Shown here: positions 9,393 to 13,450 of the stretch, in pieces
Layout of the letters: each line of letters opens with the position of its first letter
How positions within the stretch are numbered: position 1 is the first letter of the stretch
Sequence record: OP991903.1
Direction: 5' to 3' (one strand)
DNA: 64,000 nt
Notes under the pieces: model-generated
What the model was told of the DNA's origin: nothing
Databases searched by the model: none
Seen by the model: the letters and a program-made list of their open reading frames with translations, nothing else
Position numbers and translations under genes: made by a program

Positions 9393-10034
9393 TTACAGTT
9401 TAACGACCCGTAGAGACTTCAAGTATCCCGTGAAACGGTTAACCAGTCCGTGAGACGTCCCCAGCATCAGGTACGAATCACCCCCAGTACGGAATCTGGC
9501 AGCGACGGCCTGGTTACTGTTTTGATTGTTGGAAACGGTAATGTTTGCGCTGTCCTCTTTTACCGTTAGCTTCAACATCTGGTTATTGGCACTACCATAA
9601 CCGTAAGTGCGTTGATACGCGCCCGCGTCAGTGGTCTGGAAGACCTGGATGGGTTGGCTGAGTTGGTTGTGCAGTAACTCCAGCCCTTTCTTGATGTTGT
9701 TGGCAGCCGGGTAGTCACCCGTAGCGAACGTGCACATGAACCCACTGCCAACCAACGCTAACTCTATTGTCAGCTCGTAGTTACTGCCCGCCAAATCCAA
9801 CACCGGTGACAGGTTCTGAAAATACGCGTACCCATCGAAGTAGTAACACTTCCCATACGTGGGGTCGTTCACTACCCCGTCCCCATTCGCACCACCTGTC
9901 ACCACGCCCCGGGTCAGCGGAATCCCCAACGGACCCGAATCAATGATGGTCTTGTCGCCTACTGTCGCGTTAACAAAGTTGATGTCGAGTAGAATCTTCC
10001 CGGATTTCCTTCCCATCAAGTTACTTTCAAACAT
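9393..10034 (-). CDS. putative virion (tail-associated) protein, LamG/concanavalin-like; paralog of next gene
   Basis: N-tag MFESNLMGRKSGK; shares GDGVVNDPTYGKCY.F.G..YF, F.TGDY and FTG..KSL with 10052..10684; beta-rich. Confidence 0.6.
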   Translation of the reverse strand: MFESNLMGRKSGKILLDINFVNATVGDKTIIDSGPLGIPLTRGVVTGGANGDGVVNDPTYGKCYYFDGYAYFQNLSPVLDLAGSNYELTIELALVGSGFMCTFATGDYPAANNIKKGLELLHNQLSQPIQVFQTTDAGAYQRTYGYGSANNQMLKLTVKEDSANITVSNNQNSNQAVAARFRTGGDSYLMLGTSHGLVNRFTGYLKSLRVVKL

Positions 10035-10051
10035 GACTACCTCACTTTACC

Positions 10052-10684
10052 CTAGAGGAGTTCAATCTTTAAGGACTTCATTAACCCCGTGAAGCAGTAA
10101 GCCGGGTTCTGCGCCACGCCGATACGGAAGAAGGTTTCTCCCAGGGTGTTGAAATCAGGGTAGGAGTTCTTCTGCCCCGTCCGCGGACTCTCAATCGTTA
10201 CACCGGTTGACCGCCGAGTAATGATGATGGTCTCCATCACCGTCGGACGCGTACCGTTTAAGAGCACCCGCTGGTATTGACCATTGCACATGAAGTACTG
10301 TACCCACTGACTGGCGTAGTTGTTGATGCTCAACGACGAGCCTATATTGGCGGTAGGGTTATAATCCCCTGTCCCAAAGACGGCCTCGGCCTTGGCGGCC
10401 AAACTTTGAAAGACCAGTGTGATACGGTACTCTTTGTTCCAGATACCCGGTCTTCCCGTGGGGTCCTCGAAATACGTTATACCGTTAAACCGATAACACT
10501 TCCCGTAGGTTGGGTCATCGACAACACCGTCGGTTCCGTTAACAGTCCCGCTTCCTTGTTTCCGTCCAAAGGTAAAATTTCCCGATTTGCTAGTGAGGAC
10601 CTGACTGCCTACTACGGCGTCCTCAAAGTCAATGTCGACAACAACCTTAGAGCGTTTTTGTCCACCTAATAAATTCGCTTCCAT
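10052..10684 (-). CDS. putative virion (tail-associated) protein, LamG/concanavalin-like paralog
   Basis: Likely start MEANLLGGQKRSK (ATG 10684, GGGG RBS); DGVVDDPTYGKCYRFNGITYF. Confidence 0.6.
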   Translation of the reverse strand: MEANLLGGQKRSKVVVDIDFEDAVVGSQVLTSKSGNFTFGRKQGSGTVNGTDGVVDDPTYGKCYRFNGITYFEDPTGRPGIWNKEYRITLVFQSLAAKAEAVFGTGDYNPTANIGSSLSINNYASQWVQYFMCNGQYQRVLLNGTRPTVMETIIITRRSTGVTIESPRTGQKNSYPDFNTLGETFFRIGVAQNPAYCFTGLMKSLKIELL

Positions 10685-10740
10685 TATAAAGACCCCATCA
10701 CTTGAATCACCCAGTGCTATAGGAAGACGCATAAAAGCAC

Positions 10741-10766
10741 CCCACCGTAGCGTTGGCTACGGTGGG
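10741..10766 (-). terminator. terminator hairpin followed by TTTTATGC
   Basis: CCCACCGTAGC-GTTG-GCTACGGTGGG (plus strand) just after the stop at 10772. Confidence 0.75.
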
Positions 10767-10771
10767 AGCAC

Positions 10772-11248
10772 TTATTTATTTCCTTCTAACTTACGCAACT
10801 CATCAGCCAGTTGCGCCGCAGCAGCGTCTTGCTTGTTTTCCGCAGCAGACGCTTTGATGGCATCCCGGATTAACATCTGAGCCGTGTCATTTGGTAACAG
10901 AAGGAACTCGGAGTAGTTATACCCGTACAGGTCCTTCATGCGGTAGACACGGAACTTTTCCACTAACGCCTCGTACATGCCTCGGTTAGCCGCCATCTCC
11001 GTCTTATGCATCTCCATGGGAGCGTACGGATGTTTGGCGGCGTATTCCGGGGTGTAGATGCGGTGGTCCAGGTCGTATGCCCGTCGCAGCGCTAACTTGG
11101 CCTGAAACTCCGTTAAGCTACCGGCAGACTCGAGGACGCCATAGACGCGTTCGCCGAGACCTGTTGTACAAAATTCCGGATGCCTAACGTCGAAAGGTCG
11201 GTCAGCGGCTGAATCCCCGCGTGAACCATCTTGCGTTGCGCAAGGGTA
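10772..11248 (-). CDS. -1 frameshift C-terminal extension of the assembly-chaperone gene (gpGT-like)
   Basis: Frame is open from 11290 to TAA 10772 with no ATG/GTG/TTG between the slippery site and ATG 11017; C-terminus YGYNYSEFLLLP resembles gpT/GpE-like chaperone tails. Confidence 0.75.
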   Translation of the reverse strand, partial: YPCATQDGSRGDSAADRPFDVRHPEFCTTGLGERVYGVLESAGSLTEFQAKLALRRAYDLDHRIYTPEYAAKHPYAPMEMHKTEMAANRGMYEALVEKFRVYRMKDLYGYNYSEFLLLPNDTAQMLIRDAIKASAAENKQDAAAAQLADELRKLEGNK

Positions 11249-12936
11249 AAAAAACCCAGTGCAGCATTGAACGGCAGAATCAGTCGTGCTTCACCTCCAC
11301 GGTTCAGGTGGAGTTTACCACACGCCGAGCACGGCACGTTGATGGAGGCGATGAGGGAAACCATGCTGTTCTGGATATAGTTATCCACCGCACGCAACAG
11401 TTCGTTCACGGTAGCCGGTTCTGCGGACAGCAGTTTCAGGATATCGCGAATCTCATCTTCCCCGTCGATGGTGTCAGGGGAGTCTTCATCTTCCGGGTTC
11501 GGGATTTCGATGTTACGGATGTAGTGACCGTAACGACAGAGTTGCTCTGAACTAATCAGGCTGTTGATTAGCGCAGCACGCTTCTGGTCATTCCCTTCCA
11601 GGTCTTCGCCCATGGCTTCAACCAGCGCACGGTTCACGGAGTTAATCCATTGACGACCGTTTGCGAAGTATTCCGCCAGCGTAGAAACGAAGAAGTTGAA
11701 GCGACGACTCTTGTACTCGAAGTACTCGTTCTCGTGCGTCAGGAAGTCAGCCTGGTATTTCTCCAGGTCTTCATCCGTTACACGACCCGTACCAGCGCGG
11801 TCCATGTGGGTACGTTGTGCCGTGGTGAGACGACCTTCATCCACCCAGGACATACGTAGCAGAGAAGCAAAGACGCGGTCAGTGTGACGACATTCACCGT
11901 CAGTACACGGAATCGCAATGTCTGTACCGTCCGGCCACGCCGCCACAGCCATCCCCCAGATTAACTGGTCTTTGTCGTGGGCACTGATGACTTCTTTCAG
12001 TTCCAGCGGCGAAGAGGCAATCGGGTAACTGGTAGACGTTACCAGACGCAGTGCAGCATCAACCAGGATTTCTTCGAACAGCAACGCTTCGTTGGAGTTC
12101 AACATCCCAGACGTGTCCATGCCGAGCTCAGGACGGGCAAACGCCAGTGCACGGTCAATCTCGGCCAGGTAACCGATAGACGGCGTACGCATGGTCACCC
12201 AGATACCGGTGCGCCACAGAGGAACCTGAACCGGGTGACCGATACCTGTACCGGTAACGAACGCTTCGGTTGCACGACTACCCACCAACGCCTGACCGTT
12301 CTTCTGACCTTCAGGACGTTTGAACAGGGTCTTACGCAGACGGAGTTCGCGCCCTTTCTTCCCGGTGGCGATTTCGTTCACCCAGTGCGCTTGGTCACGC
12401 ACCACAGCTTCAGTCAGGCCTTTACCGGAGAGAGACGAGTCGATAGCATCACGCATGGCCAGGAACCAGTTGTAATCATCCAGACCCGCCATGTCCCCCA
12501 TGCTCTCACCGCGGAGGTAGTAATCCTCCAGGGTGGTGCGCAGCAGAGACAAGTTCGCCGAGAAGTTGGCCTTATTCGACGCATCCTTTAATGGCGAACG
12601 AGAAAGGTCAACTTTCCCTTCCACTTTGTCGTCATCAAAGAAGAACCCTACTTCGCTCACTTCCTGGGCCTGTTCTACCGGGGCGTCATCGTCAGCCTCG
12701 GTGCTGTCGTTCGGTAGGTCAGTGGCAGTTACCGCTGCTTCCGCCGTCGCCTCAGGAACGGGTTGAATATCAGTAGCAGGGTCAACTTGCTGGGGAGCAG
12801 GTTCGGCAACCACCGGAGCAATCTCCGGCTGCTGACTGACGACTTCGACAACCGCATCATCGTCTTGAAATGCGGTATCGGGTAACGGACGCAGACCCGC
12901 CGGGAGTGGCGGGGTATCTTCAGGCAGGTTGGACAT
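11113..12936 (-). CDS. putative tail/baseplate-hub assembly chaperone (T4 gp26 / gpG-like; phiKZ gp77-like)
   Basis: 607 aa; P/A/D/E-rich disordered N-terminus, CxxxxC (CTDGEC) and CxxC (CSAC) motifs; carries the frameshift signal. Confidence 0.6.
   Translation of the reverse strand: MSNLPEDTPPLPAGLRPLPDTAFQDDDAVVEVVSQQPEIAPVVAEPAPQQVDPATDIQPVPEATAEAAVTATDLPNDSTEADDDAPVEQAQEVSEVGFFFDDDKVEGKVDLSRSPLKDASNKANFSANLSLLRTTLEDYYLRGESMGDMAGLDDYNWFLAMRDAIDSSLSGKGLTEAVVRDQAHWVNEIATGKKGRELRLRKTLFKRPEGQKNGQALVGSRATEAFVTGTGIGHPVQVPLWRTGIWVTMRTPSIGYLAEIDRALAFARPELGMDTSGMLNSNEALLFEEILVDAALRLVTSTSYPIASSPLELKEVISAHDKDQLIWGMAVAAWPDGTDIAIPCTDGECRHTDRVFASLLRMSWVDEGRLTTAQRTHMDRAGTGRVTDEDLEKYQADFLTHENEYFEYKSRRFNFFVSTLAEYFANGRQWINSVNRALVEAMGEDLEGNDQKRAALINSLISSEQLCRYGHYIRNIEIPNPEDEDSPDTIDGEDEIRDILKLLSAEPATVNELLRAVDNYIQNSMVSLIASINVPCSACGKLHLNRGGEARLILPFNAALGFFTLAQRKMVHAGIQPLTDLSTLGIRNFVQQVSANASMASSSLPVA
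11230..11257 (-). promoter_or_regulatory. -1 programmed ribosomal frameshift signal
   Basis: Minus strand CTG GGT TTT TTT ACC CTTGCG-CAA-CGCAAG: in-frame XXXYYYZ heptamer, 6-nt spacer, 6-bp hairpin. Confidence 0.75.
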
Positions 12937-13450
12937 CAGTTTCTTCCTTTTGCTTTTCCAGCACTTCGCTCACGCCGTCTTCACGTGGTGCGTAAGTGTC
13001 AACGAGAATGGCCAGTTGGGAAATGGCTTCACCAGTACCCGTAATCAGAGTGGACAGGTAATTTTCTGCCATGTTCAGAATCGGGACGAACTCCAGGTCG
13101 TCTGCGTGCGCACGCGCAGCAATCTTGTCCGCTTCTTTTTCCAGCGCAGAGACACGCAGTGGGAAGGCGACGTATTCCACTTCCACACCCTGTGCATCAA
13201 TGGCTTTACCCGGAGCCAGCACTTCAATAATCGCCCGCAGGTGCGCTTGCGATTCAATCTTGTGTTCCGGAGAGAACTGGTCTTCCATCACACCCACAAT
13301 CTTGGCGAGCTTTGCAGTCTCGAACAAGATGTCATCAATCTTCTGGCAGGTTTCTTTAACCAGCTTGTACCCCGGAAGTGTACGAACCGGACGGTAACCT
13401 TTTTGTTTTTTGACCTTTTTGGTTTTACGGTTGTTCTTTGAAACAGGCAT
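12920..13450 (-). CDS. hypothetical protein with basic N-terminus
   Basis: 176 aa, MPVSKNNRKTKKVKKQK; overlaps the start of the next gene by 17 nt. Confidence 0.75.
   Translation of the reverse strand: MPVSKNNRKTKKVKKQKGYRPVRTLPGYKLVKETCQKIDDILFETAKLAKIVGVMEDQFSPEHKIESQAHLRAIIEVLAPGKAIDAQGVEVEYVAFPLRVSALEKEADKIAARAHADDLEFVPILNMAENYLSTLITGTGEAISQLAILVDTYAPREDGVSEVLEKQKEETDVQPA

Follow-up and report, generated by a model that had tools for sequence, protein, structure and literature searches.

Does the locus at positions 10,772 to 12,936 of the stretch analyzed here encode two genes, as annotated, or one gene with two products? The stretch, referred to below as the window, comprises 64,000 nucleotides (nt) of sequence record OP991903.1 from Erwinia phage vB_Ea277G (hereafter Ea277G), which belongs to Iapetusvirus within the Chimalliviridae. 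GenBank lists two hypothetical proteins at the locus, of 607 and 81 amino acids (aa). Based on annotations and a published table, the 607-aa gene is the Chimalliviridae core gene cg18, that is, the phiKZ gp77 family. A first-pass annotation, made from the letters of the DNA alone, had proposed that a programmed -1 ribosomal frameshift near the 3' end of this gene gives two C-terminal forms of a putative tail or baseplate assembly chaperone. The frameshift part of that proposal receives strong comparative support from the analysis described here, and we estimate a probability of roughly 0.8 that a single cg18 mRNA yields two proteins through programmed -1 ribosomal frameshifting.

Our current hypothesis is as follows. 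Most ribosomes would pass the residues Phe562-Phe563 and stop 44 codons further on, resulting in the 607-aa short form. A fraction would slip back by one base on the sequence T_TTT_TTT, with both Phe-tRNAs re-pairing with TTT, and would then read 158 codons in the -1 frame to give a 721-aa form with a flexible linker and a C-terminal domain made up of helices only. No RNA stimulator would be required, since the heptamer class is among the most slip-prone in Escherichia coli. The short form would be comparable to T4 gp26 and the long form to T4 gp51, and a fixed ratio of the two would serve tail-hub assembly, as the G:GT ratio does for the lambda tail.

Anatomy of the slip site in Ea277G

The elements of the locus that bear on translation are the following.

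11113..12936, minus strand: 0-frame open reading frame (ORF) of the 607-aa short form, with a match to phrog_4585 and to cg18 homologues
11248..11254, minus strand: conserved slippery heptamer T_TTT_TTT in 0-frame phase, made up of the third base of Gly561, Phe562, and Phe563
11251..11257, minus strand: second in-phase heptamer, G_GGT_TTT, not conserved (missing in Moabite and SPLA10)
10772..11248, minus strand: -1-frame extension of 158 codons plus TAA, with a match to phrog_12109
11113..11248, minus strand: putative dual-coding overlap of the 0-frame tail (44 codons) and the -1-frame linker, marked by a drop in synonymous change
11018..11112, minus strand: stretch that is intergenic in GenBank, where the -1 frame is open and start-less and, by its substitution pattern, evolves as coding sequence
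10772..11017, minus strand: annotated 81-aa ORF (WBF04846.1; gp001 of PhiEaH1), the C-terminal half of the extension, with no Shine-Dalgarno (SD)-like sequence
11230..11244, minus strand: hairpin of 6 bp with a 3-nt loop, starting 3 nt past the conserved heptamer; not conserved

Codons 560-564 of the 607-aa ORF read CTG GGT TTT TTT ACC on the minus strand (11259..11245). Between 11290 and the TAA at 10772 no stop interrupts the -1 frame, which after the T run contains 76 codons without ATG, GTG, or TTG; the first such codon, ATG 11017, is codon 77. The predicted products are thus a short form of 607 aa and a long form of 563 + 158 = 721 aa. In these respects, and in the hairpin, the first-pass description of the sequence was accurate, as was its remark that ATG 11017 has no obvious ribosome-binding site. 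The SD duplex at this ATG has a dG of +0.6 versus -4.5 to -9.1 at the starts of 13 neighboring genes, and no SD-like match is present. The 81-aa ORF is not a credible separate gene.

Phage PhiEaH1 is likewise a member of Iapetusvirus within the Chimalliviridae; it is 99.2% identical to the window region and identical to Ea277G at the slip site. The linear PhiEaH1 record, NC_023610.1, begins inside the cg18 homologue (L002:1-1813 in our locus numbering), which is therefore cut by the record ends and unannotated there, so that only the 81-aa ORF (gp001) is annotated.

Conservation of the slip site across Chimalliviridae

Relatives of the locus were found by tblastn in 215 phage records. The 31 distinct loci examined come from GenBank phages, with more than 17 genera represented, and from contigs of IMG/VR and Logan. 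The Phe-Phe pair is invariant in the cg18 family and is encoded as TTT TTY (TTG once) within a run of T6-T8 in 31/31 loci, and the downstream ORF lies in the -1 frame in all of them. The heptamer is T_TTT_TTT in 18 loci, T_TTT_TTC in seven, T_TTT_TTG in one, G_TTT_TTT in four, and A_TTT_TTT in one. Accordingly, a canonical in-phase X_XXY_YYZ heptamer is present in 26/31 loci and a shifty tetramer in 31/31, the slip-prone tetramer being retained in the five loci with G or A. The conserved slip site is T_TTT_TTY and not G_GGT_TTT, which the first-pass annotation had offered alongside it. The 0-frame stop follows the site by 8-44 codons, the -1-frame ORF extends 151-181 codons from the site, and the first possible start codon in the -1 frame lies anywhere from +8 to +85. 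The upstream ORF is 507-721 aa long in the relatives, with much of this variation explained by a disordered N-terminus.

The codons at the site are not those that the genes otherwise use. Most cg18 genes favor TTC for Phe, and some have no TTT versus 12-17 TTC elsewhere, yet TTT is the first of the two Phe codons at the site in 26/26 lineage representatives (P = 2e-17 against each gene's own codon usage). The base before this TTT is T in 22/26 representatives (P = 5.5e-10). That the T run recurs in the same phase and with an open -1 frame, and that codon choice is biased there, is therefore far beyond chance.

The named members of cg18, phiKZ gp77 (PHIKZ077), PhiPA3 074, 201phi2-1 gp136, EL gp47, SPN3US gp39, RAY gp267, and Goslar gp081, are all labeled "hypothetical protein". 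The proteins called gp77 in the Goslar and PhiPA3 papers were considered and set aside as different from the phiKZ gp77 family. Counterparts of the small downstream ORF are PHIKZ076.4, PhiPA3 073, 201phi2-1 gp135, SPN3US gp40, and RAY gp266. As had been anticipated, every GenBank record seen gives the locus as two ORFs, the split made by standard annotation. The core-gene list omits the small ORF, probably as a result of its wildly differing annotated starts.

The split could in principle be an artefact or the mark of a decayed gene, arising from a homopolymer sequencing error or a recent frameshift mutation in what is really one continuous frame. Homopolymer runs are prone to error, and one member of the extension family does read across both frames. 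This family was represented by 43 sequences of 80-253 aa. All but one are separate, short gene calls (42 sequences, 80-174 aa); the sole exception, P0031, is 253 aa long and reads from the 0 frame into the -1 frame. Its source (L028) is a 2303-nt Logan contig from SRR32346285 in which the gene copy is broken into several ORFs and which differs from a 97.6% identical relative by four indel columns in 1.8 kilobases (kb). P0031 is thus probably a sequencing or assembly error and not a natural fusion. A fused form was absent among 28 homologues of the upstream protein, the full-length ones of which are 576-626 aa; a second protein search with the family alignment returned the same 28 proteins, and a third added P0031 only. 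The same layout recurs in 31/31 independent genomes from many groups and methods, including phiKZ, 201phi2-1, SPN3US, and PhiPA3, with PhiEaH1 identical at the site, and the lone exception stems from an indel-rich contig. This distribution already refutes an artefact, to which we assign a vanishingly small probability.

Coding selection without a start codon

The Iapetusvirus clade provides a view of the extension before any possible start, as its members have 76-78 codons of the -1 frame without ATG, GTG, or TTG. Ea277G was compared with three relatives, L025, L026, and L027, whose proteins are 82%, 78%, and 56% identical to its own. In the interval from the 0-frame stop to the first ATG, positions 1/2/3 of the -1 codons carry 1/0/10, 5/2/12, and 12/10/18 differences, respectively. 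Upstream of the site, synonymous change affects 23-46% of 0-frame codons with an unchanged amino acid. In the 44-codon 0-frame tail, the corresponding counts are 0/39, 2/35, and 8/29, a synonymous rate of 0-6% versus the two closest relatives. Judged from these alignments, synonymous change collapses past the slip site in the manner usual for overlapping reading frames, the second frame here being the putative extension. Within the overlap, differences are commonest at third positions of the -1 frame, which indicates that the -1 frame is more constrained than the 0 frame.

In the family as a whole, at least ten lineages have conserved -1-frame motifs that precede any start codon, among them phiKZ (first start at +85), RAY, pEa_54, and EarlPhillipIV. 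In Ea277G itself, a conserved -1-frame motif is located upstream of ATG 11017. Homologues of the extension that were called as genes have ragged N-termini.

Individual annotations illustrate how the start has been chosen. PHIKZ076.4 (L029:3240-3482) has an annotated start 85 codons past the T run, leaving an apparent gap of 218 nt, and the PhiPA3 downstream ORF (L030:2847-3251) has one inside the conserved motif. The annotated start of RAY gp266 (L033:2601-3149) lies upstream of the T run.

These observations bear on the reading embodied in GenBank, namely that there are two separate genes, with the downstream ORF starting by itself from varied or non-canonical starts, possibly coupled to termination, and with the T run kept for Phe-Phe only. 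Every GenBank record annotates two genes, and the -1-frame start of RAY, being placed upstream of the run, would agree with this. Early start codons near the upstream stop are also available in RP12 (+14), 201phi2-1 (TTG, +8), and Psa21 (+18), and these count against frameshifting as the sole route to the extension; independent initiation in these phages could add to the frameshift or replace it. Two genes do not account for the 76-85 start-less codons in the Iapetusvirus clade and phiKZ, which nevertheless show coding selection and conserved motifs, nor for the lack of an SD-like sequence at ATG 11017. A need for Phe-Phe explains neither the use of TTT against codon bias nor the preceding T. 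Moreover, the first start wanders over the whole range given above while the length of the extension measured from the run stays within 151-181 codons, and the ragged N-termini of the gene-called homologues point the same way. We consider two independent genes to be quite improbable.

RNA context and the probable origin of the slip

The hairpin at 11230..11244 had been put forward as a stimulator. All six of its pairs form only in Ea277G, L025, and L026, the last two being its nearest relatives; elsewhere one to five of the six pairs remain, with no compensatory change, so this role is not supported. Folding of the 70 nt past the site gave a mean z-score of -0.66, with values below -2 in 4/31 loci, and an Rfam search of the region returned nothing relevant. 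A stimulator is not obligatory for every known frameshift site, and the slip motif alone may be sufficient here. In E. coli, H_HH.U_UU.Y heptamers rank with the most efficient, and the tetramers U_UU.C and U_UU.U with the most slip-prone; insertion sequence (IS) elements have U_UU.U_UU.C as one of their motifs (Sharma et al., PMC4066793).

Weighing against programmed frameshifting, in addition to the early starts described above, are two features of the site. Neither a conserved downstream RNA structure nor an upstream SD-like stimulator was found, and slip efficiency may be low as a consequence. Furthermore, the G or A that precedes TTT_TTT in 5/31 loci makes for imperfect re-pairing of the P-site tRNA there.

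The same lack of an RNA stimulator would be expected if the slip occurred during transcription, with a phage RNA polymerase stuttering on T6-T8 so that mRNAs with an altered run put the extension in frame. Chimalliviridae use their own unusual multisubunit RNA polymerases, which adds to the appeal of this explanation, as does the presence of a homopolymer run at every locus, T7 or T8 in 21/31. Known bacterial transcriptional slippage typically requires runs of about nine (see the review PMC5009743), and the run is only T6, short for the known cases, in 10/31 Chimalliviridae loci and in all 49 cyanophage loci described below. UUUUUUU is under-represented in genes, and it is thought to be avoided partly on account of transcriptional slippage (PMC4066793). 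The run is always phased as 0-frame TTT TTY and forms a canonical heptamer in 26/31 loci, which transcription does not need, although the invariant Phe-Phe also fixes the phase. The constant phase and the T6 runs favor the ribosome over the polymerase. We infer a ribosomal slip on these grounds, and regard transcriptional slippage as unlikely, if less so than two independent genes.

Likely relationship of the cg18 protein to T4 gp26 and gp51

The protein features that enter the comparison with other phages are the following.

12655..12936, minus strand: acidic, proline- and alanine-rich N-terminus (residues 1-94), predicted to be disordered (predicted local distance difference test, pLDDT, below 50)
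11302..12138, minus strand: core (residues 267-545) that can be aligned with the T4 gp26/gp51 family by hhalign and BFVD, with the Cys pairs C344/C349 and C536/C539

In the AlphaFold model of the short form (607 aa; pLDDT 73, predicted TM-score 0.74), the acidic N-terminal residues 1-94 are disordered, the core mixes alpha and beta elements, and confidence is low for the tail that follows residue 585. The extension was modeled with a pLDDT of 83 as a disordered linker of ~30 residues followed by a helical region (residues 31-157) with a long final helix. Sequence searches of the PDB with both parts and Foldseek searches of the PDB with both models returned nothing, and no solved structure of gp26 or gp51 turned up in the PDB. 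In contrast to the PDB, BFVD gave fold matches beyond the protein's own family, labeled "baseplate hub assembly protein, bacteriophage T4-like" (probability 1.0, E 1e-3 to 1e-2, target-normalized TM-score (TMt) 0.48-0.57). Two GenBank annotators chose similar labels.

The four Cys of C344/C349 and C536/C539 are invariant in the cg18 family. A gp26-like profile was built from T4 and six distant gp26-like genes. Aligned by hhalign to these seven sequences, the cg18 family gave an E of 2.3e-4 over 192 columns, with both Cys pairs aligned; against T4 gp26 alone, only 13 columns were aligned. Other searches provided little on function. The 607-aa protein matches phrog_4585 (E 4e-99), a family of unknown function, and PHROGs returned only unknown-function families for the locus. 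Pfam searches of the 607-aa protein and of all 33 family members gave stray zinc-ribbon matches only.

Several results weaken the case for a kinship with gp26 and gp51. The hhalign probability for the match to the seven gp26-like sequences was 44%, and PF12322, the Pfam family of gp26 and gp51, matched 0/33 cg18 members at E up to 5. The Chimalliviridae extension aligned with the gp51 tail collinearly but only marginally, at an E of 1.5e-3 with a probability of 17%, and hhalign of the extension family against full-length T4 gp51 alone gave nothing. In addition, no baseplate genes adjoin the 607-aa gene in the window. On balance, a distant kinship with gp26/gp51, the T4 chaperones of baseplate-hub assembly, is most likely, the cg18 protein being a much enlarged version; as judged from the profile and fold comparisons, membership of the PF12322 family is likely, not established. 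The earlier suggestion of a baseplate assembly chaperone is therefore retained insofar as the fold and profile links to gp26/gp51, although weak, are coherent, while a chaperone of the lambda type is unsupported. Neither gp77 nor gp76 is mentioned among the 40 proteins in the virion atlas of phiKZ, and Goslar gp081 likewise goes unmentioned in the Goslar virion paper. Their absence from these accounts is consistent with a non-structural assembly factor.

The same site in T4-like phages

The T4 genes themselves do not have the arrangement. T4 gp26 (gene at L043:10803-11429) and gp51 (L043:11480-12229) both match PF12322 strongly, which makes them paralogues, and gp51 has 48 extra C-terminal residues beyond the PF12322 domain. 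In the alignment, gp26-like proteins end one to three residues past a conserved Phe-Phe. T4 gene 26 encodes this pair as TTC TTT and has no -1 ORF after it. Three other phages, Agrobacterium phage OLIVR5, cyanophage S-WAM1, and Cronobacter phage LPCS28, have T_TTT_TTC at the C-terminal Phe-Phe, and there the -1 frame runs on for 57-65 codons. The -1 extensions of the gp26-like genes lie at the following positions.

L047:972-1157, L048:969-1163, and L049:972-1142: -1 extensions of distant gp26-like genes
L050-L129: cyanophage loci

The three -1 peptides are alike and homologous to the gp51 tail: they resemble the in-frame C-terminal 48 residues of T4 gp51, and by BLASTP this tail matches the S-WAM1 peptide with an E of 7e-7. 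The S-WAM1 peptide matches 579 phage records, mainly of cyanophages and of Vibrio, Aeromonas, and Rhizobium phages. Among the records listed, the matches fall mostly under a "baseplate hub subunit" gene and a tiny "baseplate hub assembly catalyst" ORF. In GenBank, the -1 extension of the T4-like phages is either a tiny separate ORF or unannotated. In 49 distinct cyanophage loci from IMG/VR, T_TTT_TTC is present in 49/49 and the -1 ORF spans 65-67 codons. For 15 of the 49, there is no start codon before +18, and in the start-less stretch of such loci (14 distinct segments), the codon-position entropy is 0.4/0.0/5.8.

The simplest reading is a single gene whose short product is gp26-like and whose long product, made by a -1 shift, is gp51-like; T4 has two paralogues in its place. 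It is possible, at odds somewhat short of even, that an ancestral contractile-tail hub gene encoded both forms through a -1 shift at the Phe-Phe, that this arrangement survives in the Chimalliviridae and in hundreds of cyanophages and T4-like phages, and that T4 genes 26 and 51 are a derived duplication.

Comparison with known recoding systems

The frameshift in tail assembly chaperone genes is described as conserved among tailed phages in the summary given by PMC5009743 (Levin 1993; Xu, Hendrix and Duda 2004). In lambda, G and GT are a short major and an extended minor form of an assembly factor that is not part of the virion, and their ratio matters (PMC5009743). The likeness of cg18 to gpG/gpGT is one of mechanism, not of membership. 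In both, an in-phase heptamer near the 3' end would direct a -1 shift, with a short protein as the major form and a C-terminally extended one as the minor form, and neither product is expected in the virion. In both, too, the arrangement is kept across very divergent phages despite the divergence of the proteins. The proteins share no sequence or fold similarity, with no link in Pfam or PHROGs and with tail assembly chaperone entries in BFVD at an E of 4 or more. The cg18 protein is 4-5 times larger, its gene adjoins virion RNA polymerase and head genes in place of tube and tape-measure genes, and its heptamer is T_TTT_TTY versus G_GGA_AAG in lambda. The first-pass annotation had called the locus a jumbo-phage equivalent of G/GT, and this homology is to be rejected on the grounds of match, size, and neighborhood.

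The likeness to T4 lies in the products. The cg18 short form ends soon after a conserved Phe-Phe, like gp26, and the predicted long form carries an extra C-terminal helical tail, like gp51. The cg18 protein differs in being ~3 times longer, in its disordered N-terminus, and in large insertions, and the extension is 150-180 aa in Chimalliviridae compared with about 50-65 aa in the gp26/gp51 group. T4, unlike cg18, encodes the two forms as paralogous genes and has no slip site in gene 26. The orfA/orfAB genes of the IS3 and IS1 families and E. coli dnaX resemble cg18 in that bacterial ribosomes shift by -1 on a homopolymeric heptamer. Those sites usually have a downstream hairpin or pseudoknot and/or an upstream SD-like stimulator, none of which is conserved in cg18, and the transposase and DnaX proteins are unrelated to it.

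The first-pass annotation knew of no description of such a frameshift in phiKZ-like phages, and the literature agrees: in full texts, subscription journals not being covered, we found no description of a frameshift in phiKZ gp77, in cg18, in the Chimalliviridae, or in a gp26/gp51-type gene. A frameshift in the T4-like baseplate-hub gene thus likewise seems to be undescribed.

Genomic neighborhood in the window

The neighbors of the 607-aa gene are homologues of phiKZ gp78, gp79 (head), and gp80 (virion RNA polymerase), two virion-structural paralogues, and a helicase. The features that flank the locus directly are the following.

10740..10767, minus strand: strong terminator-like hairpin of 12 pairs followed by a T-rich tail, just past the -1-frame stop
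9393..10034 and 10052..10732, minus strand: tandem paralogues of 213 and 226 aa (phrog_6011, "virion structural protein"), directly after the terminator-like hairpin
12920..13450, minus strand: upstream gene of 176 aa, a phiKZ gp78 homologue by synteny, overlapping the start of the 607-aa gene by 17 nt

The hairpin at 10740..10767 marks the end of the transcription unit. The 17-nt overlap suggests translational coupling of the 176-aa gene with the 607-aa gene. The 176-aa protein has no Pfam or PHROG match.

Implications for nucleus-forming jumbo phages

Since cg18, to which no function has been assigned, belongs to the set of 68 core genes shared by nucleus-forming jumbo phages, a frameshift at this site would correct the annotation of every Chimalliviridae genome, with one two-product gene replacing a gene and a ragged small ORF. 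In phiKZ, the roughly 220-nt "intergenic" gap would be filled by the extension. The locus would also be a natural example of efficient-class U_UUU_UUY slippage without an evident stimulator. The finding offers a testable function for a core protein, namely hub assembly with a fixed ratio of short to long chaperone, and would connect tail assembly in jumbo phages to the poorly understood gp26/gp51 pair of T4. That T4-like cyanophages and other phages have the site as well suggests that the recoding is old and widespread and is systematically missed by gene callers. If the shift is indeed ancestral to contractile-tail hub genes, it would follow G/GT as the second ancient, family-spanning frameshift in phage tail morphogenesis, and hub assembly would be governed by the ratio of the two forms.

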